DNA of 60,630 bases, counting the filler, from Basidiobolus meristosporus CBS 931.73 (Eukaryota > Fungi > Basidiobolomycota): NCBI GenBank assembly GCA_002104905.1. It is 3 parts of 3 records of this genome, joined end to end, with 100 filler letters (N's around TTAATTAATTAA, not from the genome) between each part and the next. Parts side by side here need not be neighbours in the genome. Positions count along the whole stretch, not along the records: positions 1 to 30,409 come from MCFE01000850.1; 2 more parts are not named here. One strand, written 5' to 3'. This document shows, piece by piece, positions 679 to 29,289 of this stretch. The position numbers were made by a program, and so were the translations under genes. The notes beneath the pieces are model-generated. The model did not search any database, was not told the origin of the DNA, and saw only the letters and a program-made list of their open reading frames with translations. Each line of letters opens with the position of its first letter. The first letter of the stretch is position 1.

Positions 679-2166
679 ATGGATCAAGGATCTATCGAAG
701 TTATTGCACTCATATTTACTGTGACTATAACCTGGCATTTCTACACGAGACTTCGGTGCCCTTCTTCTTTGTGTAAAATCCCGTCAGTCCCGTTCTGGAA
801 GAGCTTGCTGGCCACGTTCAAGTCAATTGATAGCTTAGAGCGCTTCGATAAACTCGTGGTACCTGTTCTTAATGAAAAAGGTATCGCAAAACAGTTTTTC
901 TTTGGGAGGTGGATGGTTATGGTTTCGAATCCAGATTATGCCAAAAAGATCTTGATGAAACCAGACGCCTTCCCCAAGATACAATTGAACGAAGAGCTGC
1001 CACACACACTGAGCGCCCAACTTGGCAAGGTCAACATAGCCTCAGCCAACGGAGACGAATGGAAGAGGCATCGCCGTGTGGCCAACCCTGCGTTCCATCG
1101 GTCTTGGAGTACTTCAGAGTTTGGAAAACTGGTATCTAAATTGATTGTAGAAATTGAAAACACCCACGGACCCGTATCGGTAACTGAGTTGATGCAAAGA
1201 ATGACACTGGATGCCCTTGGAAAAATCATTTTCGATTATGACTTCAGCGCTATTGAAAACAAAGGGGGCGATCTAGTCCAGACATATAACTCTGTCATGA
1301 CTGAGCTCAATGACCCTTTCTATATCATGTTTCCATACTTAGAGAACCTCCCGTTGGTTGGGCGTCGCGGATATCAAACGGACTTGACGAGATTCGATGA
1401 CTTCATAATGGGGATTATTAACAGCAAAGTTAAGAATATACGCACCAACAAAACCGTTGACTTGCAGAAAGCTGATCTAGTGACATTGATGGTTCTTTCT
1501 GCTGAGGAAGGGAACCAGATTCTTACCCCCGAAGAGATCCGTAACGATGTCATTGTGTTTTTCATTGCTGGACAGGACACCACGTCAAACGCTCTTGCAT
1601 CCACTATTTACTATCTGGCCGTTCATCCCGTAATCCAGCAGCAGGCCCGAGAGGAGGCAATCCGAGTGTTGGGTAACGAACCCCAGGATGTATGGCCCAC
1701 TTACGAGCAGCAGCAAAATGAACTACCATTCATCACAGCTATTATGAAGGAGTCCATGCGCCTAACCCCTTCGGCTACTCAAGTGCTCCCTCGCCGTTGC
1801 ATGAAAGCCGTTCAATTTGGCGAGTTCGTACTTCCAGAGGGGACTCCAGTCAACGTAGATATTTATTCCATGCACCATAATCCAAAGAATTGGGACAAGC
1901 CATACAGCTTTTTGCCTGAGCGCTTCTTGAATGAGAAGACAGAGCATGATCTTTACGCTTGGATGCCATTTGGCGGAGGCTCTCGTCGCTGTTTAGGAAT
2001 GAATTTCTCTTTGATTGAACAACGGGTGGTCTTGAGCATGTTGTTAAGAAAGTATGCCTGGTCCCTACCTGAAGATAGTATTCATACTGATCGATTGAGG
2101 ACCACCCCTAGCTCTGGATTGATGGAGATTCGTGATCTGAACGTCAACTTCAAAGCGCTCTACTAA
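679..2166 (+). CDS. Cytochrome P450, intronless, 495 aa
   Basis: N-terminal membrane anchor, I-helix AGQDTT, K-helix KESMR (ExxR), PERF, heme motif FGGGSRRCLG. Confidence 0.95.
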   Translation: MDQGSIEVIALIFTVTITWHFYTRLRCPSSLCKIPSVPFWKSLLATFKSIDSLERFDKLVVPVLNEKGIAKQFFFGRWMVMVSNPDYAKKILMKPDAFPKIQLNEELPHTLSAQLGKVNIASANGDEWKRHRRVANPAFHRSWSTSEFGKLVSKLIVEIENTHGPVSVTELMQRMTLDALGKIIFDYDFSAIENKGGDLVQTYNSVMTELNDPFYIMFPYLENLPLVGRRGYQTDLTRFDDFIMGIINSKVKNIRTNKTVDLQKADLVTLMVLSAEEGNQILTPEEIRNDVIVFFIAGQDTTSNALASTIYYLAVHPVIQQQAREEAIRVLGNEPQDVWPTYEQQQNELPFITAIMKESMRLTPSATQVLPRRCMKAVQFGEFVLPEGTPVNVDIYSMHHNPKNWDKPYSFLPERFLNEKTEHDLYAWMPFGGGSRRCLGMNFSLIEQRVVLSMLLRKYAWSLPEDSIHTDRLRTTPSSGLMEIRDLNVNFKALY

Positions 2167-3652: not shown

Positions 3653-6600
3653 CTACGCTTGGCCAAGATTCTGATGCTCCACAAGAGTGAAGTATTTCTT
3701 TCTTTGTGCCATTAACTCTTGGTGAGTTCCTTCTTCAACCACCACGCCTCCTTCAAATACGAAGATGCGATCAGCATGTTGAATCGTAGACAGTCTGTGT
3801 GCTACCGCGATGGTTGTGCAACCGGTGGCAGCCTACACAATGTGTTAGTTTGCAAGTAGTTGTGGGAGGATTCAGTGTTTGTTCATGTCACCTTGTTCAA
3901 AGCATCTTGTACCACCTTTTCACTTTGTGAGTCAAGTGCAGAGGTCGCCTCATCAAGTAACAATATCTATGCAAGAAATGATTCTTGATCAGTACTTCAT
4001 GTTTGCAATCATGAGCGTTAGCTTTTTACCTTGGGGTTGCGAATAAGTGCTCTAGCAATGGCGATTCTCTGTCTCTGGCCTCCACTAAGCTGTCCGCCCT
4101 TTGTACCACACATAGTATCGTAACCATCAGGCAACGAAATGATATAGTCGTGAATGTTGGCTTGCTTACAAACTCGCTCCACCTCTTCTTGAGTGATGTC
4201 ATCACGATCTGAGCCAAGAAGTACATTGAAACGGATACTGCCTTGGTACAGCACTGGCTCTTGACTCACCAAAGCAATGTTATTTCGATGCTGGTGAACG
4301 TTTTTCTTCTTGATATCCTGCCCGTCAATAAGTACTGTGCCCTGGAGGGGATCATAAAATCTTCTCAGCGTTAAATTACCGTGTAGCTGCAAAAAAAGGA
4401 AATGACGAAGTACCTTTCGATGAGGGAAATGACGGTACTTTTACCGCAGCCACTCTCTCCAACCAAAGCACAGAACTGACCGGCCTTAATCTGATGTAGG
4501 AATACATAAGGTTAGTTTGATTTTGCCGGATTGTATAGAATGGGAATTACCTTCAAATTGAGGCCTTGCAAAACCGGAATATCTGGACGAGATGGATAAC
4601 GGAAGTGAATCTCCTTCAGCTCTATCTCACCCTCAATATCGCCCTGTCCCTTGCTCTTTCCAGCATCCTGGGATTGACCAATGGTTGGCTTTTGCTCTAT
4701 CAATTGGAAGATATTGCTTGCAGCCATCTTAGCCTTGGTTAGATCAGGAGCAAGCGAGAACATTTGCCCGGATGCCTGAGCACTGAAGAGTAAAGCGGGG
4801 AGGACAACAAAGAATTGCTTCGAAGAGAATTCCCCATTACTCACCAATCTTGAGCCCCACCTAGGAATGGAGATGATTAGCCATTCCCGTAATGAAGACA
4901 TAGCAAAACTTACCAATAGGCGAGTGCATATAGCAAGTACGCTATACTGTAACCGAGGGAAAGCCAGAAATTACCAGTCATAATGGATTTCATACTATTT
5001 TTGTATGGCCCCTCAAGGCTCTGGTGATACAAACGGCAAACATCTTCCTCTCGAGAGAGTGTAGCTACGGTTTGGATCGCCCCGATAGCTTCACTTGCCA
5101 ATGCACCCGACTTCACGTAGGCAGTTTCATGGCGTTGCTGCGCAGAATATTGTTAGATTTCCTGGAGTAACTCAGTACAAAGATGGATTGTCTACATACA
5201 TGGAAATTAGCGAGGACGCGGACTCGTAGGAACCCAGCCATGAGCATAATCGGAACTGCAGCCAGTACTACGATGGCGATTTTCCAGGCGATTACATGCG
5301 CCAAAATGATACCAGCGAACAAACTAGTCATAATGGAGAACACTGTTCCTACGACAATACCAGTGAGGCCACCTAGATGATTTGTGTCGGTGTTAAGCAT
5401 AGCGACCAAGGACCCAGTGGAGTGGCGATCGTCGTCAAACCATGCAATATCTTGGTTTATAATGGACCTGCGACGGAGGAGAGATTAGTCGATCATACTT
5501 GTCAATCCATAAACAATGCAATCAACCTGAAGGATAAACAGCGTGTACGTAGTAGCAGTTTCTCTGACACCCATCCGAACATACTTCCATTGACAGAGTA
5601 AGCGGTAAATTCAATAAACGCCACCATCAGGAACCCTGAGCACACAGAGTGAGTGCTAGGAAATACGAATTGATAAACACACGTAACTTACAGAAACTGT
5701 ATAGATTGACCTGGGATCGAAGCTGTGACAAGTCAGTTCTCAGACTTAGAGCATCAATCATGTGCGAAAAGAGGATTGATTCTGCCGAGTAGGCTCCACC
5801 AATAATGATAGAAGCTAGGAACGATTAGATTCATGATTGTGCCCTTCACTGATGATGGTCACTTACACATTAAGCCCCCAACTACAAAAAACCATTCTGG
5901 CTTGACAATTTTAGCCACTCGTTTCATCAGTGTAAATACGCCAAGCTGAGACCTGCGACCTCCAGGCTGAGGTCCCTGACTTTCGTTATCAGCAAATAGC
6001 TGGATCTCCTCACCATGGTAGGATTCTTTAACGATCAACGGGTCCTCCGAGTTAGCCATGTTGCTATCAACACTTTCAGCAGACAGTTTTTTAGAGGTGC
6101 TCTTCAATTTCTCCTGATCGCTTGACTCGGAGGCAAAGCTTTGAGCCTCCACAAGGTGATAATACGCTGATTCACGAGCCATCAGTTGACTGTGGGTTCC
6201 TTGCTCCAAGATTTTTCCTTCAGCCCTTCAGAATGAGGAACAATTAGCTACTGGATGTGGTCCTTAGCTTTGATACGACTCACATTACGACAATGTTGTC
6301 TGCCTTCTTAATGGTAGACAATCTATGAGCGATGACCACAGTGGTTCTGTCCTTGGTTGCCTTTTCCAAGGCCTCTTGAATAAGACGCTCACTTGTTGCA
6401 TCTAGCGCCGAGGTCGCCTACACAATGGGTTGGTAACAGTGATTTTCAAGAGAGGTTGAATATGGCGTACCTCATCCATTAACAAGATGGTTGGATTAGA
6501 TACAAATGCGCGGGCCAAGGCGATTCTTTGTTTCTGACCACCAGAGAGTAAAAGACCGCCTTCACCGACGGTTGTGTTATAGCCGCGCGGAAGTTTAACG

Positions 6601-8405
6601 ATGAAGTTATGAGCATTAGCCAATTTCGCTGCCTCAATACATAATTCTTCGATCTTTGCTTTTTTCAATCCTGCGGAATTGCTGTTAAGTAAGCCGTGAG
6701 AAATATTCTCCATGATGGTGGTGTTGAACAGAGTGGGATTTTGCATCACAAGTTTCATTTGTCCTCGCAACCAGTTGATGTTAAGGCTCTTGATATTTCT
6801 GTTGTCGAGCAGAACCTCACCCTCTACCGGATCGTAGAATCGCTCAACAAGGCCAACTACATGGATACACTTGCTAAAATTAGTACATGCATTATTCAGA
6901 ACGCCGGGCATGCGTACTGACCTATAGTCGATTTCCCAGAACCTGAAACGCCTACAATCGCTGTGGTTTTTCCAGCAGGGATTACCAAATCAACACCCTT
7001 CAAAACGACGGCGTTTGGTCGGCTCGGATAGATAAATTTGACATTACGTAGCTCCAAGCGACCTTCGCAAGCGTCTGGCTTTAGACCCTCTTCGGATAAG
7101 GGGTCAATGGGAGAGACTCTGTCGATAGTTCGGAAAATTTTTTCACCCGCCCCCGAAGCCAACGAAAACGTTTGCATGAACGGGGCGATCTGGCCGATGA
7201 CCATGGAGCCTATGAGAAATTAGTGATTAATGAATGCGGAAACACTTCAGCCATACTAGACTGCAATACGAACTGTCCAAAACCAAGAAAATCACCGTGT
7301 AAACACTGCCGGTATCCTTCGTGATGTCTTTGACTATGAGTCTCGATCCCTCCCAGAAGGCCAATGCATTAGCAGAGTAAGCAATGAAGAAGATTCCTCC
7401 AAGCATCAGCGCTCCAGCAATTGCTTTGCGTAATCCGTGGCGGGAAGCTATATGTAGGTTCTTCTCGTAGAGAGTGGCGAGGCGTTCCTGAGAATTAAAT
7501 GCTTGGGCTATTCTGACATTGGCCAAAGCCTCCTCAGCCACGGTGCTGGCCTTGGAATAACTCTCCATACTACGCGAGGCATACAACGCCGAGAACGCAG
7601 AACCCCCGCTGGCCACGAGCAAAAACGCCGGGACCACACAAAACAGTATACCAGTCAGCGTGGCATTTCGGACAAATCCAACGGTGAACGCAGCAATGAA
7701 GTACGAGATGGACTGGATGCACAAGCCCACCTTCTCTGAAGTTCCATTCTGAATAATTTGAGTGTCCCCCGTAATACGGCTGGATACCTACATCAGCGTA
7801 AAGAATGCTAATCAGAAATCGCGTCACGATTAAAATAACCATTCGAAAAATACCTCTCCTGAGCCAAGTTGATTGAAATAGGCAATATTTTGACGTAAAA
7901 CGGATCTTAAGTAATGCTCACGAACTTGTCGAGTTAACCTCTCCCCAATAAGACTCCAACACACGGTATAAGCGTATGTCAATACGAAATAGCCAATGGC
8001 GACGTAAATTAACTGCAAAATTTTGTGATTCACTCCATCTCTAAACTCCCCCACCTCTTCCGGAGTCATAGCAGCGGCCCCCGACGAAAATTTCGAAGAG
8101 AAGTTGTCTATAAGGTCTCCGAACAACGCCCCTATCAGTGGTAGAGGTACGCCAGCACCCAGTGCGCACAAGGTCCCGACTACGATCAAAATGGCATCGA
8201 ATTTCGTCGAGTATCTAAACAGAGAGAAATATCTCGGCTTATAGAAAGGATTTTTGGCGACAGGGGGCTCTTGTATCTGAGCCTCTATCACCTCCCGCTG
8301 ATGCTCCTCTAGCGCTGTTACTGACTCTACAGAAATCTTCACCGGTGCCTCTTCTAAAGGTTGTAGTTGAATGTCGCCTTGGAGGCCATGCGACTCATTG
8401 CCCAT
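3653..8405 (-). CDS. Full-length ABCB (MDR/P-glycoprotein) transporter, multi-exon; candidate siderophore exporter
   Basis: ATG at 8405 (MGNESHG), TAG at 3653-3655 (HQNLGQA*). Two TMD-NBD halves: Walker [10 protein letters not shown], signatures [14 protein letters not shown] and [30 protein letters not shown]. Many short GT-AG introns (e.g. 7788-7853). Siderophore role is inferred from context only. Confidence 0.92.
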
Positions 8406-8565
8406 GGTTTCGACGAGATGAATGGGAAGATCGAAATAATGGGTTGTGCCATTGCATATATATTTATTGGGTAGAGTCTCGCAAAACGTATAGTTTATGT
8501 TAAATGGATTGGTTGGATATTTGCCGGCATCAAATGGCACCTAGCGGCATTTCCTAGAAATCCAT

Positions 8566-8574
8566 TTATCAGAT
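8566..8574 (-). promoter_or_regulatory. ATCWGATAA iron-responsive GATA repressor box (SreA/Urbs1/Fep1 type)
   Basis: TTATCAGAT on + strand (ATCTGATAA on -), about 160 bp upstream of the ABCB ATG. Confidence 0.65.
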
Positions 8575-9159
8575 CAAATAATAGGGGACCAAGGCTGGGT
8601 AACATCGACTCCATTTAAGGGAACTGATGATAGGCTGATCATAAAATTTAATGTGAATGAGTAGTCCAATAAACATTTGAGTGAAATGGAGAAATACTGT
8701 TGCCATTAGGAGATAACTCACCAGCGATATTGGGGGATGGGCATCGTGTAACCATGCCCATCATATACACCGAGCATTATCTACATTCAGGCCCTGGATA
8801 AACGCGAGATGTATCATGATAGGTGCGCGCAAGTCGCACAGGCCTGGTTTTGGGTCATTGAAAATTACCCATTCCATACTGCTGACAATGCTAGATTCAA
8901 TGTTGAGCGCACTCACTGAACACAGACTAAGCGACTGATTGGCTTTCACTAAAAGTCCCCTTCGGATAACAGCAAGCAACATTATTAAACGGCAGGTTCG
9001 AGGTGCAGATTGAGGTGCAACTCCATTCCAATCCCTGAAGACTGGTCAACAGGATGTAGCGAGTTCTCTATTAGTACATCTCGGCTCATGGTCGCCACAT
9101 TTGAATGTCGGAGGCGAGTTTACTTTTATGGACACTGTATCTCACTCATTACAATGAGG

Positions 9160-9168
9160 TTATCAGAT
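9160..9168 (-). promoter_or_regulatory. ATCWGATAA GATA box
   Basis: TTATCAGAT on + strand, within the divergent promoter. Confidence 0.6.
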
Positions 9169-9588
9169 GAGAAAGTGGAGATCTACAGGATTGATCCGAC
9201 TAATGATTATGTATATCGTTGTTCGAATTATCAACCACCATCTCTCATTAGCACATGCCGCTGGAGTAATAGCTAGCTTGTCCCTTCTCGGGGCCTCTTG
9301 CATAAACAAGAGTAGGACATAGCCCTATTGGATAATCCTAGGAAATATATCAAGACGCAACATGCGTGAACTAGCGATTGGTTTAGTATGATGCTAACTT
9401 TGAGGGCTGACAATAGTCAATCCGCTCGTCACCATAAGGTTGGGGGTACGCTTGAAAGCTCACGAACGTGGTCGAATTATAAGTGAAGCCTGTGTGAATC
9501 TTGTGCGTAGTTAATAAATCATTGATCGTCGGGATTCTGCTTACAAGTCGGGAAAACATCACCCAATCAGATATGGTTGATCATCAGG

Positions 9589-9597
9589 ATCTGATAA
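9589..9597 (+). promoter_or_regulatory. ATCWGATAA GATA box
   Basis: ATCTGATAA, with a near-match ATCAGATAT at 9566-9574. Confidence 0.6.
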
Positions 9598-10005
9598 CTC
9601 TATTCGGGGCAATCCGAACGTCCAAAAGTAGGATATCTGGTTTCGGAATATCGCTCTATACATGGGAAGTCGCTAAAAACACTGTTGACCAGAAGGTATA
9701 TCTACAATTAAACTTCAATTCCCCAGAACGGCGTTATGGTAAGTTGGGCTTAATCACGTCAGTGGTTGATTATCGGAAGCTTCAGGATGAATTGCTGGTT
9801 GGAATCTGGATGATGTGGATGATGACGATGATTGACAAAGCGTAGAATTTTTTATTACCGGTAGAATGTGGAAATATGGCGGACGGGTGCATGCTGTAAC
9901 CCTAGTCATAAATTTTTCGGCATGGTACAGACGCCGTATTTGGATGTCACCTACATTAGTGGTCTTGAAAAAAGCCCATTGGGGCGAGATACATGTACTT
10001 GAGAA

Positions 10006-10049
10006 ATCTGATAAAAGTACGTGTAACCATGCTACTGCACATCAGATAA
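10006..10049 (+). promoter_or_regulatory. Paired ATCWGATAA GATA boxes upstream of the sidA fusion
   Basis: ATCTGATAA at 10006-10014 and ATCAGATAA at 10041-10049, 150-190 bp upstream of the ATG at 10197. Confidence 0.7.
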
Positions 10050-10196
10050 ACTCTAGGCCTCACACCACAATATGTGGTCTCGAAGAGAATGCTTCTTAAA
10101 AAGACAGTTGGGTGGAGATTTCTAACTTCAGAAATTGGAACTCGTTGTTTCATTTTTTACCTCTGCTGAGCGTGCCTATCTTTCACATCTATCAGA

Positions 10197-12468
10197 ATGG
10201 AATACGATCATCAAGAATACGATATTCTGTGTGCGGGTTTCGGGCCAGCGGGAGTCTCCATTGCCATTGCCATGGCTGAAGATGGCCGCCTGCAAGGCTT
10301 TGAGGAACACAGCAAAGGAATCAACCAGGGCGGTCACTGGAAAGTCGGCTTCATAGAAAAGCAAACCACCCCAGTCTGGCATGGTGGTATGCTTATTGAT
10401 GAGGCTAAGATGCAAATCAGTTTCCTTAAGGATCTTGCCACCTTAAACAACCCCAAGAGTCACTTTACTTTCATCAATTATCTGAAGGAGAATAATCGAC
10501 TTGTTGACTTCACCAATTTGGGAACCACCCTGCCATACCGATCCGAGTTCAACGATTACGTAAATTGGGTTACCTCCCACTTCAGTAGCTTGGCTTTCTT
10601 CGGTGAGGAGGTTATCTCTGTGGAGCCTATTCTTCAAAGCGGCTCCAAGGAGATCGAACGCCTCCGAGTCACCTCGAAAAGGCTTGGTGATCAGAAAACC
10701 ATCGTGCGTACTGCAAAGCATTTCATTGTTGCAATCGGTGGTCAGGCACGTTATCCTGAGTGGGTCAGCGCAAATCAGAGCCAACACAACGATCGCATCA
10801 TGCACTCCTCCCAATATATCTATAATGTCTCAAGAATGCTTCCAGAGAGAGATGCCCCCTACTCCGTAGCCGTAGTTGGAGGGGGTCAAAGTGGAGCAGA
10901 GATCTTTCAGGATGTTGTCCAGCGCTATCCCAATTCCCGAGTCTCTCTTATTATCAGAGATAGCGCTTTGCGCCCATCGGATGACAGTCCATTTGTGAAC
11001 GAGATCTTCAACCCATCTTCTACCGAGTCCTTCTACAAATTGCCGGAGGAAAGACGTAGGGCTTTCTTGAAGCATAACAGTGCCACGAACTACTCGGTGG
11101 TCCGTCTTGAGCTAATAGAGAACCTTTACTCCATCCTGTACCAGCAAAAGCTCCCTGGCCACACTCAGAAGCACTCTATTCTTTCTTCAAGACAAGTGGT
11201 CTCTTGCGAATCTGACAACGGTAGACTTATGTTGAAGCTTGGACCATGTGACGAAGCCGGCCAGCTTCTGGGTGGGCCCGAAAATTTGACCGAGCACGCC
11301 TTTGATGCTGTCTTCGTTGCTACTGGTTACCAACGAAATGTACATTCCGATATTTTGAAGCCATTGGCTCCCTATATCTTGAAGACCGACGCCTGTGATC
11401 TTCCCATCGACAGGGACTACAAGCTTCGCATGGCCCCTACCTGCCATTCTAGTATATATCTTCAGGGTTGTTGCCAGGATACTCACGGTATCAGTGACTC
11501 TCTTCTTTCTGTACTTTCTATTCGTGCTGCTGAAGTTACGCAATCTCTCAGCCAGAATCACACCAAACTAACTATTGGTATGTTTATTGGGTTGCCGATT
11601 TTTCCACCGTGGCTCTAACCATTTCTCTTTCTATAAACCAGCCCGTAACGTCAAAGATGCCGACTCCGCACTTGTATATTCGTCCATCAACTTGAACGAT
11701 AAAAATAACCTGAATTATCTTTGGGAATGGGTGGATGACTTCAACACCAGAAGAGCACCCTCAAACCAGAGATCTGGATGGTTGCGCTTCATTGACCGCT
11801 CTATTGAAGGGAAACGGGTGACCACAAATGGGGTCAATCACCCATTGCGTCCACCTTCCCCTCCTCCAGGCCAACTGATCTACAGCCGCTACATTCCCAG
11901 CATCAAGAAGACTGTCGGCTTCCGGGTAGTGGATTTGCAGCAGGATCTTAATACCTTCCATACATGGATGAACAACCCTCGTGTATCCAAGTTCTGGGCT
12001 GAAGACGGAACTATCGAGGAGCACACCACGTACCTCAAGAATCTACATGCCGACCCACACATTATCCCTGTCATAGGCTTGATTGATAACGAACCATTTG
12101 GATATTTGGAAATCTACTGGGGCAAGGAGGATCGTTTGGGCGAATTCTATTTGGCCGATGACTACGATAGAGGTATTCACTGTCTAGTTGGAGAACAGAA
12201 GTTCAGAGGCCCTGAATACGTGCACACCTGGATGAGCTCTATAAATCACTTCGCGTTCTTGAGTGAGCCCAGAACCAGCCGTCTGGTTGGTGAGCCCAGA
12301 GCAGACAATGATAAGTTGATCGGCTACGCACAAAAAGAGGGTTACAAGAGACTAGGAAACATTCAGATGAAGCACAAGGAGGCTGCACTGCTCATGCTTT
12401 CTCGTAAAACATTCAACAGCAACATCGAGGCAGGGCAATCCCTAAGAGGTTGCAGCGCCAAACTCTAA
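10197..12468 (+). CDS. sidA: L-ornithine N5-oxygenase (SidA/PvdA family) fused to an N-hydroxy-amino-acid acyltransferase (IucB/SidL/SidF-type GNAT); 2 exons, 735 aa
   Basis: Exon 1 (10197-11577): FAD motif GFGPAG, WHGGML, MQISFLKDL, NADPH motif VVGGGQSGAE, ATGY, YLQG, HGISDSLLS. Intron 11578-11641 (GTATGT...CTAAC...CAG, 64 nt) joins in frame to exon 2 (11642-12468): HPLRPP, IYSRYIP, FHTWMNNPRV, FGYLEIYWGKEDRLG, DRGIHCLVGE, GEPRADN. Confidence 0.88.
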
Positions 12469-13033: not shown

Positions 13034-13838
13034 ATGTTATCTTCTCTACCTATAACCTTTTTCCTGGTGCTGGTCTCTTTAACGAAATTTTCGAATCCCT
13101 TGCCGGTTCTTCCAAGGGATAGCTCATTGCATAAGCGCGGAGACTTCCGAGGCGAAGGCACCTATTATGACCCTGGACTAGGTGCATGTGAGATTGTTTC
13201 TAGCGATACTGAATACATTGCGGCGCTGGTAAGGGCCACTTCTGTCCCATTGGTAATTTCCGCCCAGTTGCTAACCTTCTCCCCCCCAGAACCATGTTCA
13301 GTTCGGCGTGTTTGCTAGATCCAAGAGCAGTCCCGCATGCTTTAGCTGTGCCATGGTTCATGGACCCTCTGGAAGTGTCAAAGTAAAAATTGTCGATATG
13401 TGCCCTGGTTGTAAATATGGAGACATCGATCTCAGTCCCGTGGCATTCGAGAAAATCGCTCGTAAGGAAGATGGTCGAGTTCCCATCAGCTGGGAATTCG
13501 TTTCATGCGGCGGAGGGAATCCCGATGGTGGAAAACCTGCACCCCGACCATCACCCACTAAATCTATCAACCCTCCGAAGATCTCCAACCCTACATCTAC
13601 AACTAAGCTCCCAGCTACAACTAGCACACCGGCAAAAACCCCATCTAATCCATACAAGAAGGCTCCCGAGCCTACTGACCCCAAAGAACAACTCTGCAAC
13701 TTTACAAGCAAGTGCCGCAACGCTGGACAGGATGCTGGCTTTGAGGTATGTGTGAATGGCAATACTTTCCAGCAATCATGCGCACCCGGCACTGTATGTA
13801 AAGAGGCAGACGGGGATATATATTGTGATTGGGCTTAA
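13034..13838 (+). CDS. Secreted expansin-like/RlpA double-psi beta-barrel protein with Pro/Thr/Ser linker and Cys-rich C-terminal carbohydrate-binding-like module; 247 aa
   Basis: Signal peptide then KR site; GEGTYY-PGLGAC, VKIVDMCPGC, DIDLSPVAF. Intron 13229-13289 (GTAAGG...CTAAC...CAG) restores frame. C-terminus FEVCVNG...SCAPGTVCK...IYCDWA. Confidence 0.88.
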
Positions 13839-14586: not shown

Positions 14587-14695
14587 TCTTTACCTACTGA
14601 CAGTAGGAATCCGACAAGTATAAAATACTTGACGATAGCGTCAAAGTGCATCAATCTCTTCTGATTTGAGAACAGATCCTTATCGAGCCATCAAC

Positions 14696-15769
14696 ATGTC
14701 CTACTCTCAACAGCCTTCTCACTCCCGTGGCTCTAACTATGAACAAGAGCAGGGAGCACATAACCATCATCACCAGCACAACGATCAATATGAGCGTAAC
14801 AATGAGAGACAATCCAGGAACATCCAGCGTGGCCGCGGATTCGGTCACGAACAGGATGCTGAGTGGGAGCGCTCTCACAATCGCCAATATGGCCGCAGAT
14901 TTGGACGTCAATATGAAGATGATGAGGAGTTGGAACTCCCCCGTAGCCGCCGCTACGAGCGTGGATTCGGACGTCAATATGAGAACGACGAGGAGCTCGA
15001 ATACCCTCGCAGCCGTCGCTACGGTCGTGGCTTGGGACGCCAATATGACGATGATGAGGAGCTCGAATACCCTCGTAGCCGCCAGTACGGTCGTGGCTTG
15101 GGACGTCAATATGAAGATGACGAGGAGCTCGAATATCCCCGCAACCGTGAGTGGGAGCGCTCCCACAATCGCCAATATGGCCGCGGTTTCGGTCGTCAAT
15201 ATGGGAACGACGAGGAGCTTGAATATCCCCGCAACCGTCGCTACGGTCGTGGCCTAGGTCGCCAATATGAAGATGATGAGGAGCTCGAATACCCACGCAG
15301 CCGTCAGTATGGCCGTGGCTGGGGACGTCAGTACGAAGACGATGAGGAACTCGAATATCCTCGTAGTGGTCGCCGGAGCCGTAACCTTGGCCGTCGCTAC
15401 GGTCGTGGCCTAGGCCGCCAATATGAAGATGAAGAGGAGCTCGAATACCCTCGCAGCCGTCAATATGGCCGCGGCTGGGGACGTCAGTATGAAGATGATG
15501 AGGAGCTCGAATATCCCCGCAGTCGTCGCTACGGTCGTGGCTTTGATCGTCAATACGAAGATGACGAGGAGCTTGAATACCCTCGCAGCCGCCAGTATGG
15601 TCGCGGCTTGGGACGTCAATATGAGGATGACGAAGAACTCGAATACCCCAGCAGTCGTCGCTATGGTCGCGGATTCGGTCGCAATGCGGACGAGGAGGAG
15701 CAATACTCTCGCAGTCGCCGATATGGACGTGGATGGAACCGTCAGTATGAGAATGACAAGGCCTACTAA
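14696..15769 (+). CDS. Repeat protein copy 1 (357 aa), about 12 units of QYEDDEELEYPRSRRYGRG(F/L/W)GR; low-complexity, no signal peptide
   Basis: ATG at 14696 after TATAAAA near 14620. Synonymous variation between the 66-bp units preserves the protein motif. Confidence 0.85.
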   Translation: MSYSQQPSHSRGSNYEQEQGAHNHHHQHNDQYERNNERQSRNIQRGRGFGHEQDAEWERSHNRQYGRRFGRQYEDDEELELPRSRRYERGFGRQYENDEELEYPRSRRYGRGLGRQYDDDEELEYPRSRQYGRGLGRQYEDDEELEYPRNREWERSHNRQYGRGFGRQYGNDEELEYPRNRRYGRGLGRQYEDDEELEYPRSRQYGRGWGRQYEDDEELEYPRSGRRSRNLGRRYGRGLGRQYEDEEELEYPRSRQYGRGWGRQYEDDEELEYPRSRRYGRGFDRQYEDDEELEYPRSRQYGRGLGRQYEDDEELEYPSSRRYGRGFGRNADEEEQYSRSRRYGRGWNRQYENDKAY

Positions 15770-16684: not shown

Positions 16685-16802
16685 TTCCACTTGATATTTG
16701 AGTCGTATTCACTGTATATAAGGTAAGGTGAAGGCATACCAGTTCCACACTCTTCTGTCGATTTATCCACTGACTTCCGAAGACCTTCCTCTCTCTACCA
16801 TC

Positions 16803-17750
16803 ATGGCCAATTATCAACAACCTCGTCAAACCCGCGGTTCTCGTTACGAGCAAGACTTGAACAGACATAACAGCCAGCAACAATCTCGTTACGAACGTGA
16901 GGAACAAGAGTATTCCCGCAACCGCCGTTATGGACGTGGCCTCAATCGTCGATATGAGGATGAAGAGGAGCGTGAATATCCTCATAGCCATCGTTATGAG
17001 CATAGATTGGGACGTCAGCATGAACATGATGAAGAGCTTGGATACCCCAGCAACCGTCACTATGGACGTGGATTTGGTCACCAAGATGATGATGCGGAGC
17101 TCGATTACCCCCGCAACCGTCGCTATGGCAGAGGATTTGGCCGTCGATATGAAGACGATGAGGAGCTCGAATATCCCCGCAACCGTCGCTATGGTCGTGG
17201 ATTTGGTCGTCGCTCTGAAGATGAAGAGGAACTCGAATACCCCCGCAACCGCCGCTATGGCAGAGGATTTGGCCGTCAATATGAAGATGAAGAGGAGCCT
17301 GAGTATCCCCGCAACCGTCGTTACGGTCGTGGATTTGGTCGTCAATATGAAGATGATGAGGAACTCGAATACCCCCGTAACCGTCGCTATGGTCGTGGCT
17401 TTGGCCGTCAATATGAAGATGATGAGGACCTTGAATATCCTCGCAATCGTCGCTATGGTCGCGGGTTTGGCCGTCAACATGAAGACGATGAGGAACCTGA
17501 GTATCCCCGCAACCGTCGCTATGGCCGGGGATTCAGTCGTCAATATGAAGATGAAGAGCTTGAATACCCCCGTAATCGTCACTATGGTCGTGGCTTGGGA
17601 CGCCAATATGAAGATGACGAAGAACTCGAGTATCCCCGTAATCGTCGTTATAGCCGCGGATTCGGTCGCCAATATGAGAACGATGAAGAGCTTAAATACC
17701 CCGGTAACCGGCACTATGGCCGTAGCTCAGGTCGCCAATCTGGATGGTAG
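16803..17750 (+). CDS. Repeat protein copy 2 (315 aa)
   Basis: MANYQQPRQTRGSRYEQ leader, about 11 units QYEDDEELEYPRNRRYGRGFGR, ends GRQSGW. Confidence 0.85.
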   Translation: MANYQQPRQTRGSRYEQDLNRHNSQQQSRYEREEQEYSRNRRYGRGLNRRYEDEEEREYPHSHRYEHRLGRQHEHDEELGYPSNRHYGRGFGHQDDDAELDYPRNRRYGRGFGRRYEDDEELEYPRNRRYGRGFGRRSEDEEELEYPRNRRYGRGFGRQYEDEEEPEYPRNRRYGRGFGRQYEDDEELEYPRNRRYGRGFGRQYEDDEDLEYPRNRRYGRGFGRQHEDDEEPEYPRNRRYGRGFSRQYEDEELEYPRNRHYGRGLGRQYEDDEELEYPRNRRYSRGFGRQYENDEELKYPGNRHYGRSSGRQSGW

Positions 17751-18918: not shown

Positions 18919-19750
18919 GTTGCGTATGTACTGGCTATATCCCACTTTACATGGTGATTAAATGGTATGTTCTGCGCCTTTAAAATGATTAGTAAAAATA
19001 AAGTTGATATTTCATCAAGTTCCAAATATTTTGGTTGATTTAACATTACTTGCATAATGAAGCAAAATCCACCACTGCAACAGTGAAGCCCTGTTGAATA
19101 TGAAGCATTTGTATCGACCCATTTTCGGCAATATTTGTCAGTAGCATGAGGGTGAAGGCCCATTGATATGAAGCTCTCTCATCAACCTATTCTTTGATAA
19201 GATTTGCCAGTAACACATGGGTAATGCTTATTAAAGATCAAGCATAGATCTGGAATTGTCACATTGTTTCGACACCATTAATCATGTGTTAGGATCATCA
19301 ATTCACCAAGTGGCTTAGCCTTGTCAAGCACTCCCCTCTTTAGGTATATCTCGCCTTTTTTTTTAAGCTCAGGTAGAAGTATACTTGTTCATATGCGGAT
19401 TTATTCTCTACTGCTTTATTAATGATGTCGTGCTAAATATGATGCTCTCGTATCGGCCCATACCTGGACAATATTGGTCAATACAGTGTGGGTAAATATT
19501 CCACAGATATCCAATATCGATCGTGGGTGAATATTCCACAAAGATCTAGTATAGATCAAGTATATCAGCATCCCTTTAATGCCTGTGACCATATGCTTGG
19601 ATCTTTGAGTGGCTTGGCCTTGTCAAGCACTCCGCCACTTGTCATATGTGTCGTCCTCAATGTATAAAAGTTAATGAGGAAGTATACCATTTCCACACTC
19701 TTCTATCGATTTATCCTCCGACTTCCGAAGACCTTCCTCTCTCTACCATC

Positions 19751-21079
19751 ATGGCCAATTATCAACAACCTCGTCAAACCCGCGGCTCTCGTTACGAGCA
19801 AGACTTGAACAGACGTAACAATCAGCCACAATCTCGTTATGAACGTGAGGAGCACGAATATTCTCGCAGCCGCCGTTCTGGACGTAGCCTCAATCGTCGA
19901 CATGAGGACGAAGAGGAGCGTGAATATCCTCATAGCCATCGTTACGAGAACAGATTTGGACGTCAGTATGATGATAACAAAGAGTTTGAATACCCCCGTA
20001 ACCGCCGCTATGGCCGTGGCTTGGGTCGTCAATATGAAGATGACGAGGAACTTGATTACCCCCGTAACCATCGCTATGGCAGAGGGCTTGGCCGTCAATA
20101 TGAAGATGACGAAGAGCTAGAGTATCCCCGCAACCGTCGCTATGGTCGTGGCTTTGGCCGTCAATACGAAGATGATGAGGAGCTCGAATATCCACATAAT
20201 CGTCGCTATGGCCGTGGTCTAGGACGTCAATATGAAGATGACGAAGAGCTAGAGTATCCCCGCAACCGTCGCTATGGTCGTGGCTTTGGCCGTCAATACG
20301 AAGATGATGAGGAGCTCGAATATCCACATAATCGTCGCTATGGCCGTGGTCTAGGACGTCAATATGAAGATGACGAAGAGCTAGAGTATCCCCGCAACCG
20401 TCGCTATGGCCGTGGCTTGGGTCGTCAATATGAAGATGACGAGGAACTTGATTACCCCCGTAACCATCGCTATGGCAGAGGGCTTGGCCGTCAATATGAA
20501 GATGACGAAGAGCTAGAGTATCCCCGCAACCGTCGCTATGGTCGTGGCTTTGGCCGTCAATACGAAGATGATGAGGAGCTCGAATATCCACATAATCGTC
20601 GCTATGGCCGTGGTCTAGGACGTCAATATGAAGATGACGAAGAGCTAGAGTATCCCCGCAATCGTCACTATGGTCGTGGCTTCGGGCGTCGATATGAGGA
20701 TGATGAGGAGCTTGATTATCCACGCAGCCGGCGCTATGGTCGCGGATTTGGTCGCCAATACGAAAATGACGAAGAACTTGACTATCCCCGCAGCCGCCGC
20801 TACGGTCGTGAAGAAGAGCTTGAATATCCTCGTAATCGTCGTTATGGCCGTGGCTTAGGACGCCAATATGAAGGTGATGAGGAACTTAACTATCCCCGCA
20901 GCCACCGCTACGGTCGTGGCTTTGGCCGTCAATATGAAGAGGACGAAGAACTCGAATATCCTCGTAACCGTCGTTATAGCCGTGGTTTCGGTCGCCAATA
21001 CGAAAACGATGATGAGCTTGAATATCCTCGTAGCCGCCACTATGGCCGTAGCTCAGGTCGCCAAACTGGATGGTATTAA
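19751..21079 (+). CDS. Repeat protein copy 4 (442 aa, 17 units)
   Basis: Intact ORF with exact higher-order (multi-unit) nucleotide repeats; ends GRQTGWY. Confidence 0.85.
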   Translation: MANYQQPRQTRGSRYEQDLNRRNNQPQSRYEREEHEYSRSRRSGRSLNRRHEDEEEREYPHSHRYENRFGRQYDDNKEFEYPRNRRYGRGLGRQYEDDEELDYPRNHRYGRGLGRQYEDDEELEYPRNRRYGRGFGRQYEDDEELEYPHNRRYGRGLGRQYEDDEELEYPRNRRYGRGFGRQYEDDEELEYPHNRRYGRGLGRQYEDDEELEYPRNRRYGRGLGRQYEDDEELDYPRNHRYGRGLGRQYEDDEELEYPRNRRYGRGFGRQYEDDEELEYPHNRRYGRGLGRQYEDDEELEYPRNRHYGRGFGRRYEDDEELDYPRSRRYGRGFGRQYENDEELDYPRSRRYGREEELEYPRNRRYGRGLGRQYEGDEELNYPRSHRYGRGFGRQYEEDEELEYPRNRRYSRGFGRQYENDDELEYPRSRHYGRSSGRQTGWY

Positions 21080-21824
21080 GCTGCGTATGTACTGGCTATA
21101 TCCCACTTTACATGGTGATTAAATGGTATGCTCTGCGCCTCTAAAATGATTGGTAAAAATAAAGTTGATATTTCACAACCAAGTTCCAAAGAATATTGGC
21201 CTAGCTGATGCTACTTGCTGTAAAGTAATAAAATTTACCGCTGCAGCAGTGAAGCCGAATTAGATATGGAGCTCTTCCACTGACCCATTCTTTGAGAAGA
21301 TTTGTCAGTAACACATGGGTAATGCTTAGTAAAGAACAAGCATAGATCTGGAATTGTCACATTGTTTCGACACCATTAATCATGTGTTAGGATCATCAAT
21401 TCACCAAGTGGCTTAGCCTTGTCAAGCACTCCTCTCTTTAGATATATCTCGCCTTTGCTATTTTTAAGTTCCGGTGGAAGTATGCCAGACTCACATGACC
21501 CTTTATTCCCCACCGCTGCATTAGTGAAACCGTGTTGAATATGGTTCTCTTGTATCGACCCATATTTTGACAATATTTGTAAGTAGAGCGTGAGTGGTCA
21601 TTCATCAAAAATCAAGAATGGACCAAGGATTGCAAAATCCTGTGATTTTCATAATCATATGCCTCGATCATCAATTCGTCGAGTGGCTTGGCCTTATCGA
21701 GCACTCCGCCACACGGCATTTGAGTTGTGTTCACTGTATATAAGGTAAGGTGAAGGCATACCAGTTCCACACTCTTGTGTCGATTTATCCACCGACTTCC
21801 GAAGACCTTCCTCTCTCTACCATC

Positions 21825-22823
21825 ATGGCCAATTATCAACAACCTCGTCAAACCCGCGGCTCTCGTTACGAGCAAGACTTGAACAGACGTAACAACCAGC
21901 AACAACCCCGCTACGAACGTGAGGAACAAGAGTATTCTCGCAACCGCCGTTATGGACGTGGCCTCAATCGTCGATATGAGGACGAAGAGGAGCGTGAATA
22001 TCCTCATAGCCATCGTTACGAGAACAGATTTGGACGTCAGTATGATGATAACAAAGAGTTTGAATACCCCCGTAACCGCCGCTATGGCCGTGGCTTGGGT
22101 CGTCAATATGAAGATGACGAGGAACTTGATTACCCCCGTAACCATCGCTATGGCAGAGGGCTTGGCCGTCAATATGAAGATGACGAAGAGCTAGAGTATC
22201 CCCGCAACCGTCGCTTTGGTCGTGGCTTTGGCCGTCAATACGAAGATGATGAGGAGCTCGAATATCCACATAATCGTCGCTATGGCCGTGGTCTAGGACG
22301 TCAATATGAAGATGACGAAGAGCTAGAGTATCCCCGCAATCGTCACTATGGTCGTGGCTTCGGGCGTCGATATGAGGATGATGAGGAGCTTGATTATCCA
22401 CGCAGCCGGCGCTATGGTCGCGGATTTGGTCGTCAATATGAAAATGATGAAGAGCTCGAATCCCCCCACAGCCGTCGCTACGGTCGTGGCCTAGGTCGCC
22501 AATACGAAAATAATGAAGAACTTGACTATCCCCGCAGCCGCCGCTACGGTCGTGAAGAAGAGCTTGAATATCCTCGTAATCGTCGTTATGGCCGTGGCTT
22601 AGGACGCCAATATGAAGGTGATGAGGAACTTAACTATCCCCGCAGCCACCGCTACGGTCGTGGCTTTGGCCGTCAATATGAAGAGGACGAAGAACTCGAA
22701 TATCCTCGTAACCGTCGTTATAGCCGTGGTTTCGGTCGCCAATACGAAAACGATGATGAGCTTGAATATCCTCGTAGCCGCCACTATGGCCGTAGCTCAG
22801 GTCGCCAAACTGGATGGTATTAA
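21825..22823 (+). CDS. Repeat protein copy 5 (332 aa, 12 units)
   Basis: Near-identical to copy 4 at both ends and in the 3' flank; length differs by 330 nt = 5 x 66. Confidence 0.85.
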   Translation: MANYQQPRQTRGSRYEQDLNRRNNQQQPRYEREEQEYSRNRRYGRGLNRRYEDEEEREYPHSHRYENRFGRQYDDNKEFEYPRNRRYGRGLGRQYEDDEELDYPRNHRYGRGLGRQYEDDEELEYPRNRRFGRGFGRQYEDDEELEYPHNRRYGRGLGRQYEDDEELEYPRNRHYGRGFGRRYEDDEELDYPRSRRYGRGFGRQYENDEELESPHSRRYGRGLGRQYENNEELDYPRSRRYGREEELEYPRNRRYGRGLGRQYEGDEELNYPRSHRYGRGFGRQYEEDEELEYPRNRRYSRGFGRQYENDDELEYPRSRHYGRSSGRQTGWY

Positions 22824-24539: not shown

Positions 24540-25707
24540 TTACACTTTGATTTCTTCCTCCTCAATCATCATGGTATCCTTCTCCCCACGCACCACCACA
24601 ATGTCCTTCTCGAGCTGCATAAATCCACCATACTTGTAGATCAAGATCGCCAGTATCCAGATAACCACGAACAACGATACGATGCAGTAGCCAACGATGT
24701 CGAAATTATCTCCAATGGTGCCAAAGAACTCCCAGAATGATCCGGTCAGCTCTAGCTTATCACCAAGAATGTTGAACACCTGAACCAGTCCAATGAGGAT
24801 GGCAATCAGCACGGAGATGAAGGTGATGGTGAAGTTGAAGTAGATCTTGCGGATAGGCGAGATAAAGGCCCAGCTGTAGGTGCACAACATGAGCATACCA
24901 TCCAGCGTGTCAATCAGGGACATTCCGGCAGTGAATAGGAACGGGAAGAATAGGATCAGTCCAATGTTGAGTCCGTTGTTGGCTTGTGTAGCAGACAGCG
25001 CCAATAATGTGATCTCGGTGGCTGTGTCGAACCCGAACCCGAACAACACCCCCAACGGATACATCTTCCAGCTAGCATCGATGAAGTTGAAGATTGGTCT
25101 GAAGAACCTGGACAAGACTCCTCCCGAGTTGAGCATCTCCTCCACATCAATCTCTCTGTATACCTTCTCTCGACGAAGTGTCTGCAGCTGTTTCCAAATG
25201 CTAACCAGGACAATTGCGTTCATGATACCGATTAGCAGTAAGAATGCACCAGATACACAAGTCCCAATCACTCCACTCACATCCTGGAATGCGGGGAACT
25301 TATCGGCCACTGCTGTAGCCGTGGCTGCGATGGCAATGGCTGCTACAACCACAATTGTCGAGTGGCCTAAAGAGAAGAAGAGTCCCACAAGGCATGGTCT
25401 CTTGCCAGACTGGATCAACTTTCTCGTGACATTGTCGATTGCTGGATATCCATTAGTCACGAATCGGTAAGCAATTAGAACTGATGATGATCTACCTACC
25501 AGTAATATGATCAGCATCTAAAGCATGGCGAAGTCCAAGGGTATATGCCAGAACTGCCTGGCTGACGAGTCCATTGTATGACCGCAAAGCAAGGATAGCG
25601 GCTACCCACAAGGCGATGTTTACCACAACCAAAGTGGAAATAGTAATGATGATCTTCCGCCTAAGCGGCTTATTCTCAGCTGTCATGAATGCCCTGTAAA
25701 CCTCCAT
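24540..25707 (-). CDS. nic1: High-affinity nickel permease (NiCoT/HoxN family), 369 aa, 2 exons
   Basis: Signature RHALDADHI, FSLGHST, LFGFGFDTATE. Intron 25442-25499 joins DADHIT-A-IDNVTRKL. Confidence 0.93.
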
Positions 25708-26553: not shown

Positions 26554-27460
26554 TTAAGAGAATACCTTAAATTTCAACTTCTCACGCACCACCATAATGT
26601 CCTTCTCGAACTTCCCAAATCCACCATACTTGTAGATCAAGATCGCCAGCATCCAGATAACCACGAACAACGATACGATGCAGTAGCCAACGATGTCGAA
26701 ATTATCTCCAATGGTGCCAAAGAGCTCCCAGAATGATCCGGTCAGCTCTAGCTTATCACCAAGAATGTTGAACACCTGAACCAGTCCAATGAGGATGGCA
26801 ATCAGCACGGAGATGAAGGTGATGGTGAAGTTGAAGTAGATCTTGCGGATGGGCGAGATAAAGGCCCAGCTGTAGGTGCACAACATGAGCATACCATCCA
26901 GCGTGTCAATCAGGGACATCCCGGCAGTGAATAGGAACGGGAAGAATAGGATCAGTCCAATGTTGAGTCCGTTGTTGGCTTGTGTAGCAGACAGCGCCAA
27001 TAATGTGATCTCGGTGGCTGTGTCGAACCCGAACCCGAACAACACCCCCAACGGATACATCTTCCAGCTAGCATCGATGAAGTTGAAGATTGGTCTGAAG
27101 AACCTGGACAAGACTCCTCCCGAGTTGAGCATCTCCTCCACATCAATCTCTCTGTACACCTTCTCTCGACGAAGTGTCTGCAGCTGTTTCCAAATGCTAA
27201 CCAGGACAATTGCGTTCATGATACCGATTAGCAGTAAGAATGCACCAGATACACAAGTCCCGATCACCCCACTCACATCCTGGAATGCGGGGAACTTATG
27301 CCAATGGCTGCTATAGCCACGACCGTGGAGCAGCCTAAAAGTCCATCATATGATCACAAGACAAGCATAGCGGCTACTCACAGGCCAACATTTACCATAA
27401 CCAAAGTTGAAATAGTGAGAAAAATCTTCCGTCTGGGTGGCTTATTCTGACAACTTTCAT
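26554..27460 (-). pseudogene. NiCoT paralog pseudogene
   Basis: 5' part (27300-27460) has two in-frame TGA stops and deletions removing RHALDADH to FSLGH. The 3' part is nearly identical to the intact gene. Confidence 0.85.
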
Positions 27461-28336: not shown

Positions 28337-29289
28337 TCATAGTGGCTTCTGCCCCCAAGTATAGTAAGCGAATCCGTAGGTTTTATACTCGAAACATTCT
28401 TTCTCAAATTCCTTCAGTAGCTGAGATATCTGCTGCTCCGTTTTCCCAGAGGCTGCAACAAACAAGGGCATCATGTTAGCAAAGATCATGCTCAGATCTT
28501 TCACCATGAATTTGTCTATTTCACTGTTGCTAATTCCCATGGGCGAAACGTGACGCGAGTGATGGATATTACTTAGCCCTCCTTGCTTCACAAAATTTGG
28601 GATTTCTTGAACGACGTAGGGATCGATTCCTCTTTTCTTCATGAAGGCGGTAAAGTATGGCTCCAGCTGTTTCCAGGCCGGACCGTAATCCCGGAAGTAA
28701 ATATCCGTGTCGATGATTTCTATCCAACCACCTGGCTTAACCACTCGTATCAATTCCGCGCATAGTTTCGGCCAGGCTGTAGCAGGCATGCCAGCAACTA
28801 GTAATCTTTGGTACACGAAGTCGAAAGTGTTGTCTTTGTATGGGAGTCCTTTTAAAATGTCGCCCTGTGTAAAGGTGAAATTTGGAAAGTCGTTCTCAGG
28901 GTCAATGCCACCGTTGACATCAATCCCGTCAAACATGGTGTCGGGAAACAGAAGAGACATGTCCTATGAATTGCGCATGTCAGCAAAACGCTATTCAAGA
29001 AAAATCATTCAGCCGGAATACCTTTGCCCAGATTCCAGTACCGCATCCCACATCCAAAATACGCTTGACGTCTTTACTAATCGGTGCACCATAATTACCT
29101 TTGCGAACATACCGGAAGATATAGTGTTGAATGTTCAATCTTGATTGCAAACAGTTAAACATTGTTCCTTTAAATTTGGAGAGTCACAGGAGCTGACCTA
29201 CTAAGCTCCGCTATGTTATTTGGCAATACGTAAGGAACTTCCTCAAACTTTGAGGTAGGCTCCTCTTCATTTGAATAGTTGGATAGCAT
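28337..29289 (-). CDS. SAM-dependent methyltransferase, LaeA-like fungal class; 278 aa, 3 exons
   Basis: Exons 29289-29198, 29139-29022, 28963-28337 with two 58-nt introns. YVLPNNIAELSRLNIQHY, SAM motif ILDVGCGTGIW, FDFVYQR, RVVKPGGWIE. Confidence 0.9.

Follow-up and report, generated by a model that had tools for sequence, protein, structure and literature searches.

In Aspergillus the ornithine hydroxylase SidA has been validated both as a determinant of virulence and as a drug target. In the characterised systems the hydroxylase and the acyltransferase that follows it in siderophore synthesis are separate proteins, SidA with SidF or SidL and Sib2 with Sib3, as an earlier note on the DNA described here had rightly stated (10.1101/2024.08.20.608788; PMC11424930). 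Sib2 and Sib3 of Schizosaccharomyces pombe, an ornithine N5-oxygenase and an N5-transacetylase, form a physical complex, and ferrichrome synthesis requires His248 of Sib3 (PMC11424930). In SidF a non-catalytic N-terminal domain (residues 1-200), which contributes solubility and oligomerisation, precedes a catalytic C-terminal domain (residues 201-462), and both are required in vivo; the tripeptide AKL is the natural type 1 peroxisomal targeting signal (PTS1) of Aspergillus fumigatus SidF, and no SidF/SidL homologs were found in Chytridiomycota among the 82 species sampled (10.1101/2024.08.20.608788). A review of N-hydroxylating flavoenzymes does not mention a fusion of the two enzymes (PMC7347517). 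Basidiobolus meristosporus shows siderophore activity in the chrome azurol S (CAS) assay and possesses fungal-type SID/SIDE nonribosomal peptide synthetases (NRPSs), but the monooxygenase is never mentioned in that report (PMC7466969). Here we analysed a stretch of 60,630 nucleotides, filler included, from B. meristosporus CBS 931.73 (the window). Its segment 10197-12468 is very probably one two-exon gene, the 735-aa product of which is predicted to be a bifunctional hydroxylase-acyltransferase. The predicted chemistry is that of known enzymes.

Predicted gene and its intron

Two overlapping open reading frames (ORFs) in different frames, 10197-11618 (473 aa) and 11575-12468, cover the segment. 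The earlier note had proposed that a 64-nt intron joins them in frame, and all of its coordinates hold. The predicted gene is composed as follows.

10197..11577, plus strand: exon 1, predicted SidA/PvdA-type L-ornithine N5-monooxygenase, residues 1-460 plus base 1 of codon 461
11578..11641, plus strand: predicted spliceosomal intron, 64 nt, phase 1, with GTATGT donor, CTAAC at 11615-11619 and CAG acceptor
11642..12468, plus strand: exon 2, linker, small beta element (WEWV...GWLRF), Acetyltransf_8 (IucB/MbtK/SidF-type) domain and stop codon

The branch A of the CTAAC motif lies 23 nt ahead of the acceptor, whose CAG ends at 11641. The split codon, G in exon 1 and CC in exon 2, specifies Ala461, and the junction reads ...KLTI-A-RNVKD... 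at the boundary of the two domains. Retention of the intron would stop translation at the TAA of 11616-11618, inside the branch-point motif. The first Met of exon 2 is residue 109, within the Pfam domain (which begins at residue 97), in agreement with the earlier observation that the second ORF has no good ATG of its own before its domain. The spliced product is an exact match to the 735-aa GenBank model K493DRAFT_293676 (hypothetical protein, MCFE01000850.1, 30,409 bp): the translations of 10197-11576 and 11644-12465 equal its residues 1-460 and 462-735, it was the top match of exon 1 with 100% identity, and its precomputed Pfam assignment is PF13434 plus PF13523.

Around the junction there are 53 formal in-frame GT/GC..AG joins, which places an in-frame join alone not above chance. 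The in-frame splice was thus dropped as evidence by itself, and the splice is supported by the consensus signals and most strongly by its conservation in relatives. The ortholog of Basidiobolus ranarum (745 aa) is 75% and 72% identical over the two halves and has one intron of 61 nt at the same site and in the same phase. The donor is identical (GTATGTTTATT) and the interior has diverged; the flanking exons are conserved. Since the intron site is kept in B. ranarum and both a paralog and other fungi carry uninterrupted two-domain ORFs, as described below, we conclude that the fusion is genuine and that the two domains belong to one gene.

Features of the two domains

Five features of the predicted protein were assigned by alignment with characterised enzymes or from the C-terminal sequence.

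10236..10253, plus strand: FAD-site dinucleotide-binding motif GFGPAG, residues 14-19, aligning with GFGPAS of SidA
10878..10895, plus strand: NADPH-site dinucleotide-binding motif GGGQSG, residues 228-233, aligning with GSGQSA of SidA
12178..12180, plus strand: codon of His640, predicted catalytic base, aligning with His130 of Mycobacterium tuberculosis Rv1347c and His248 of Sib3
12292..12294, plus strand: codon of Glu678, conserved acidic residue, aligning with Asp168 of Rv1347c and Glu286 of Sib3
12457..12465, plus strand: C-terminal tripeptide AKL, PTS1-type, predicted peroxisomal signal

Exon 1 matched PF13434 over profile positions 2-338 of 339 (E 9e-95), the A. fumigatus SidA structures with E 4e-108 and PvdA with E 2e-98, and lysine and diamine hydroxylases scored far lower against it. 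The alignment revealed that exon 1 shares with SidA the motifs KMQISF, DDSPFVNE, TNYSVV and HG(I/L)SDSLLS, the last of which reads HGISDSLLS here. The stretches KMQISF, IRDSALRPSDDSPFVNEIFNP, ATNYSVVRLELIE and THGISDSLLSVL are nearly identical to SidA; we take them to be the ornithine- and NADPH-contacting motifs of the SidA structures. An AlphaFold2 model built from a 110-sequence alignment (mean predicted local distance difference test (pLDDT) score 88.9, predicted template modelling (TM) score 0.67) showed two folded domains, with disorder only at residues 465-483 and 728-735. A Foldseek search matched the model to the SidA structures PDB 4NZH, 6X0H and 4B63 (E 4e-51, target-normalised TM score 0.89); the listing for the whole model was filled by SidA-like chains and was uninformative on the acyltransferase half, for which the sequence match to SidF given below stands in. 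Residue 461 lies in the last monooxygenase helix, just ahead of the disordered residues 465-483. The model suggests a flexible linker of about 19 residues, after which the WEWV...GWLRF beta element would lead into the GNAT core, where the pLDDT exceeds 90.

Exon 2 matched PF13523 over its whole length (profile positions 1-145 of 145, E 6e-53) and residues 241-433 of A. fumigatus SidF (PDB 7QF6) with E 2.6e-54. Because this match begins at SidF residue 241, the N-terminal domain of about 200 aa of SidF/SidL is absent here; upstream of the GNAT part there are only the monooxygenase and the 19-residue disordered linker. Matches in Dikarya were 430-550 aa long and covered only about 60-74% of exon 2. 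The acyltransferase part thus corresponds to the C-terminal catalytic domain of SidF alone, and the monooxygenase takes the position that the N-terminal domain has in SidF. This explains the compactness of the acyltransferase, to which the earlier note had drawn attention.

The B. ranarum ortholog shares the final seven residues, RGCSAKL, but differs in those before them. The second Basidiobolus copy (paralog B, described below) ends in AESN, and neither it nor any of the chytrid fusions carries a canonical PTS1. These termini suggest that paralog A, the gene of the window, may be peroxisomal and paralog B cytosolic, which is reminiscent of the split between SidF and SidL.

Occurrence of the fusion

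At least 15 early-diverging fungi were found to have the fusion, four of them next to a large NRPS; some annotations give it as one model, and others split or truncate it. In an exhaustive HMMER search with the public 735-aa protein over 1.84 billion representative proteins, followed by a local domain check and name look-up, the order of monooxygenase followed by acyltransferase was found in Phlyctochytrium arcticum, P. bullatum, Nowakowskiella, Rhizophlyctis, Chytridiales sp. JEL0842, Kappamyces, Thoreauomyces, Powellomyces (two copies), Spizellomyces, Conidiobolus coronatus and one metagenome protein. The fusion is a single intron-less ORF in Spizellomyces punctatus (699 aa) and Rhizophlyctis rosea (731 aa), and a Conidiobolus-like metagenome contig carries it in one uninterrupted ORF of 782 aa. 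In Fimicolochytrium jonesii (L010:4001-6200) a continuous ORF runs through both domains although the public model is truncated. Acyltransferase-coding sequence lies on the same strand downstream of the 573-aa monooxygenase model of Chytridium lagenaria (L008), which has a separate divergent acyltransferase gene as well. In Cladochytrium the two parts share a strand and are separated by 1.1 kb in which every frame is interrupted by stops; this may be either a split or a long intron.

Across Chytridiomycota, Basidiobolus and Conidiobolus, SidA homologs thus usually occur in the fused form. The rarity implied by the earlier note is therefore not tenable. That note had also raised the possibility that the architecture is common and already described: common it proved to be, but literature searches for a SidA-acyltransferase architecture found no paper describing it. 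The gene itself is annotated but unnamed in GenBank; the architecture is widespread in early-diverging fungi, uncharacterised and, as far as the literature is searchable, undescribed.

In Spizellomyces, Powellomyces and Cladochytrium the fusion gene stands head-to-head with an NRPS gene encoding 4914 to 5303 aa. These NRPSs are multi-module, with A-T-C repeats (L003:1-8548, L004:1-9081, L011:1-3371), and a major facilitator superfamily (MFS) transporter gene is also near the Powellomyces locus. The loci are candidate hydroxamate-siderophore clusters of Chytridiomycota.

The only named bacterial fusion found was the 598-aa protein P0334 of Lentzea flava, in which the domain order is reversed. 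Derxia lacustris P0312 was rejected as a bacterial fusion; it is a double acyltransferase with no monooxygenase. Further natural fusions of pathway enzymes came to light, namely a metagenomic monooxygenase-FMN_bind_2 protein (P0379, 711 aa), a gammaproteobacterial monooxygenase-NRPS protein (P0391, 2336 aa) and a metagenomic IucA/IucC-acyltransferase protein (P0159, 925 aa).

Paralog and gene neighbourhood

Paralog B of B. meristosporus (MCFE01000692.1, L006:10001-12271) is one stop-free ORF of 756 aa over both domains, with neither an intron nor a PTS1. It is annotated as two genes, K493DRAFT_241468 (a 'partial' monooxygenase of 454 aa) and a 217-aa 'siderophore biosynthesis protein'. In the corresponding B. 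ranarum gene (L007) the frame stays open into the acyltransferase until the contig breaks off. Upstream of the fusion gene in the window are the following.

3653..8405, minus strand: full-size ATP-binding cassette (ABC) transporter of 1310 aa, divergent from the fusion gene (public gene model; Pfam ABC_membrane/ABC_tran x2)
8406..10196, no strand: shared intergenic region of 1.8 kb, presumed bidirectional promoter

The same divergent pair of ABC transporter and fusion genes is present at the paralog B locus, and the tblastx similarity is colinear over both genes, indicating that the pair was duplicated as a unit. Contig MCFE01000850.1 carries no NRPS gene beside the fusion, only the divergent ABC transporter. 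The GC content of the fusion gene is that of its neighbours. In region 8406-10196 there are 13 HGATAR sites, where the window average would predict about 5.6, an expectation not corrected for local composition; without such a correction the excess is too weak, and iron regulation is not claimed from it.

Several other genes of the window have no evident siderophore link: a cytochrome P450 gene upstream (679-2166, plus strand), a gene for a DPBB_1 (RlpA/barwin-like) secreted protein downstream (13034-13838, plus strand), which is syntenic in B. ranarum, and a methyltransferase-domain ORF (28337-28960, minus strand). Two tandem ORFs for NicO-family (PF03824) nickel/cobalt transporters (24540-25517 and 26554-27276, minus strand) share a 300-nt stretch repeated with 97% identity at a spacing of 1996 nt, a sign of recent duplication in tandem. 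The long plus-strand ORFs at 14666-15769, 16728-17750, 19646-21079 and 21750-22823 and the annotated models there, of 357, 728 and 332 aa, gave no Pfam match. Long ORFs on both strands overlap at 14.6-15.3 kb and 16.6-17.8 kb.

Phylogeny of the two halves

In the monooxygenase tree (59 rows, 461 columns, quick search), all fusions and the chytrid models annotated without an acyltransferase formed one group, with a support of 87 in the SH-like approximate likelihood ratio test (SH-aLRT). Every sampled SidA of Dikarya fell, together with unnamed representatives, into its sister group (99). Pseudomonas PvdA fell outside these two groups, and the support of the whole assemblage was 99. The split between paralogs A and B predates the divergence of B. 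meristosporus from B. ranarum (96; 100 for each pair). In the acyltransferase tree (54 rows, 209 columns, careful search) the deep nodes were unresolved, and bacterial (proteobacterial) and Dikarya sequences were interleaved. A single clade of all fusions (p 0.41), or of all fungal sequences (p 0.34), was not rejected by approximately unbiased (AU) tests on the acyltransferase. Inheritance of one old fusion within fungi fits these data without being proved by them, and they cannot polarise fusion against fission.

Proposed function and alternatives

Most probably, the N-terminal SidA-type flavoprotein hydroxylates L-ornithine at N5 with FAD, NADPH and O2, and the C-terminal IucB/SidF-type GNAT then transfers an acyl group from acyl-CoA to the N5-hydroxy group. 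The product would be an N5-acyl-N5-hydroxyornithine hydroxamate unit, and such units would be assembled by a siderophore NRPS whose gene lies elsewhere in the genome. N5-hydroxyornithine may be channelled between the two sites, as the earlier note had suggested. The fused monooxygenase, normally a tetramer, may replace the scaffolding role of the missing SidF N-terminal domain. The fusion is probably old, being common to chytrids and Conidiobolus, and appears to have been duplicated in Basidiobolus together with the neighbouring ABC transporter gene.

Several observations count against this proposal. No RNA run was listed in the search of sequencing-run records, which is why the splice was judged by comparison with relatives. 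No NRPS or NRPS-independent siderophore (NIS) synthetase is encoded on the 30-kb contig MCFE01000850.1. In the acyltransferase tree Basidiobolus falls outside both Dikarya groups at an unresolved node, so that the tree assigns it to neither the SidF nor the SidL clade. That the PTS1 functions is a prediction made from the tripeptide itself, and the SidA of Aspergillus resides in the cytosol. What the analysis shows directly are the domains, the motifs and the gene structure; the activities, the acyl donor, the hand-over of substrate and the peroxisomal location are what we infer from them.

If the intron were kept, a 473-aa SidA would end at 11618, the acyltransferase would be made independently or not at all, and the fused model would be a merge made by gene prediction. 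Gene predictors often merge neighbours, and both the missing RNA runs and the formal in-frame joins that arise by chance near the junction leave room for such an artefact. Two separate products are nevertheless highly unlikely, since exon 2 offers no Met ahead of its domain, the splice signals are canonical with the intron site kept in B. ranarum, and the paralog and at least four other species have both domains in one stop-free ORF. A different doubt concerns the substrate: PF13434 includes lysine, ornithine and diamine hydroxylases, and the contig is without a siderophore synthetase, which would be compatible with an enzyme that acts on another amine (lysine or a diamine) or feeds a non-siderophore hydroxamate. 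We consider this very unlikely because, among solved structures, the ornithine-specific SidA and PvdA come closest, with the lysine and diamine enzymes far behind, the SidA motifs are kept, and the chytrid orthologs adjoin NRPS genes of about 4900-5300 aa, a size typical of ferrichrome-type synthetases.

The fused gene or its acyltransferase half might also have entered Basidiobolus from bacteria by horizontal transfer, a route proposed for many of its genes of secondary metabolism. Extensive bacterial horizontal gene transfer in Basidiobolus was reported by Tabima et al. (PMC7466969). After the Basidiobolus paralog, the best short matches of exon 2 were unnamed metagenome proteins of 323-350 aa with 51-54% identity, and named bacterial GNATs (44-49%) were about equal to the Dikarya matches, in keeping with the interleaving of proteobacterial and Dikarya sequences in the acyltransferase tree. 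This origin is very unlikely, however, when the position of the monooxygenase among the fungal fusions, sister to Dikarya SidA and with Pseudomonas PvdA outside, is considered together with the AU test that does not reject one fungal acyltransferase clade (p 0.34), the spliceosomal intron, the GC content like that of the neighbours and the reverse domain order of the sole named bacterial fusion found, that of Lentzea. Only tentatively, and with considerable doubt, may the data be combined into one history, in which the fusion would be the ancestral fungal form and SidA/Sib2 and SidF/SidL/Sib3 of Dikarya its fission products, the acyltransferase having later gained the N-terminal scaffold, while chytrids would make NRPS hydroxamate siderophores and one Basidiobolus paralog would be peroxisomal and the other cytosolic.

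Implications

A physical complex of Sib2 and Sib3 is what a fusion elsewhere would predict, and the fusion gives the S. pombe complex independent 'Rosetta-stone' support. It also offers a ready-made system for testing the direct hand-over of N5-hydroxyornithine to the acyltransferase. It indicates that chytrids and entomophthoralean fungi encode the enzymes of the first two hydroxamate-pathway steps in the vicinity of large NRPSs. For chytrids at large this contradicts the earlier survey, in which the chytrids sampled had no SidF/SidL homologs (10.1101/2024.08.20.608788). The fusion further bears on the origin of the two-domain SidF/SidL of higher fungi, and it exposes systematic annotation errors, with fusions split or truncated in several public genomes.

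Comparison with known systems

One close counterpart is the A. fumigatus pathway, in which SidA and SidF or SidL perform, in the same order, the two chemistries predicted here. SidA is about 41-45% identical to exon 1 and has the same fold as judged from the model, and SidF ends in the same AKL as the Basidiobolus fusion. The systems differ in that one polypeptide is encoded here and separate enzymes there, and in that the SidF/SidL N-terminal domain has no equivalent in the fusion. A functional PTS1 would place the hydroxylase, too, in the peroxisome here, unlike the cytosolic SidA of Aspergillus. The catalytic His and Glu of S. pombe Sib3 are conserved in the Basidiobolus fusion; Sib2 and Sib3 are two gene products held together non-covalently, whereas the two domains of Basidiobolus would be joined covalently.

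Acetyltransf_8 is likewise fused to an enzyme of the same pathway in the acyltransferase-NIS synthetases of the DfoC/PubC type (DfoC, PDB 5O7O, itself among the matches of exon 2), and the metagenomic protein P0159 is alike. DfoC, however, joins steps 2 and 3, so that its partner domain differs from that of the Basidiobolus fusion, and it is bacterial and not fungal. L. flava P0334 is also a same-pathway fusion from outside the fungi, but there the acyltransferase stands ahead of the monooxygenase. The orthologous fusions of Chytridiomycota and Conidiobolus, uncharacterised database entries, have the same domain order, the same boundary motif (P-x-P-G...YIP) and a monooxygenase of the same clade. 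The chytrid linkers are low-complexity, Ser/Pro-rich stretches of 73-173 aa, and the proteins are without a PTS1, whereas in Basidiobolus the linker is short, a WEWV...GWLR element is conserved, and of the two paralogs just one carries a PTS1.

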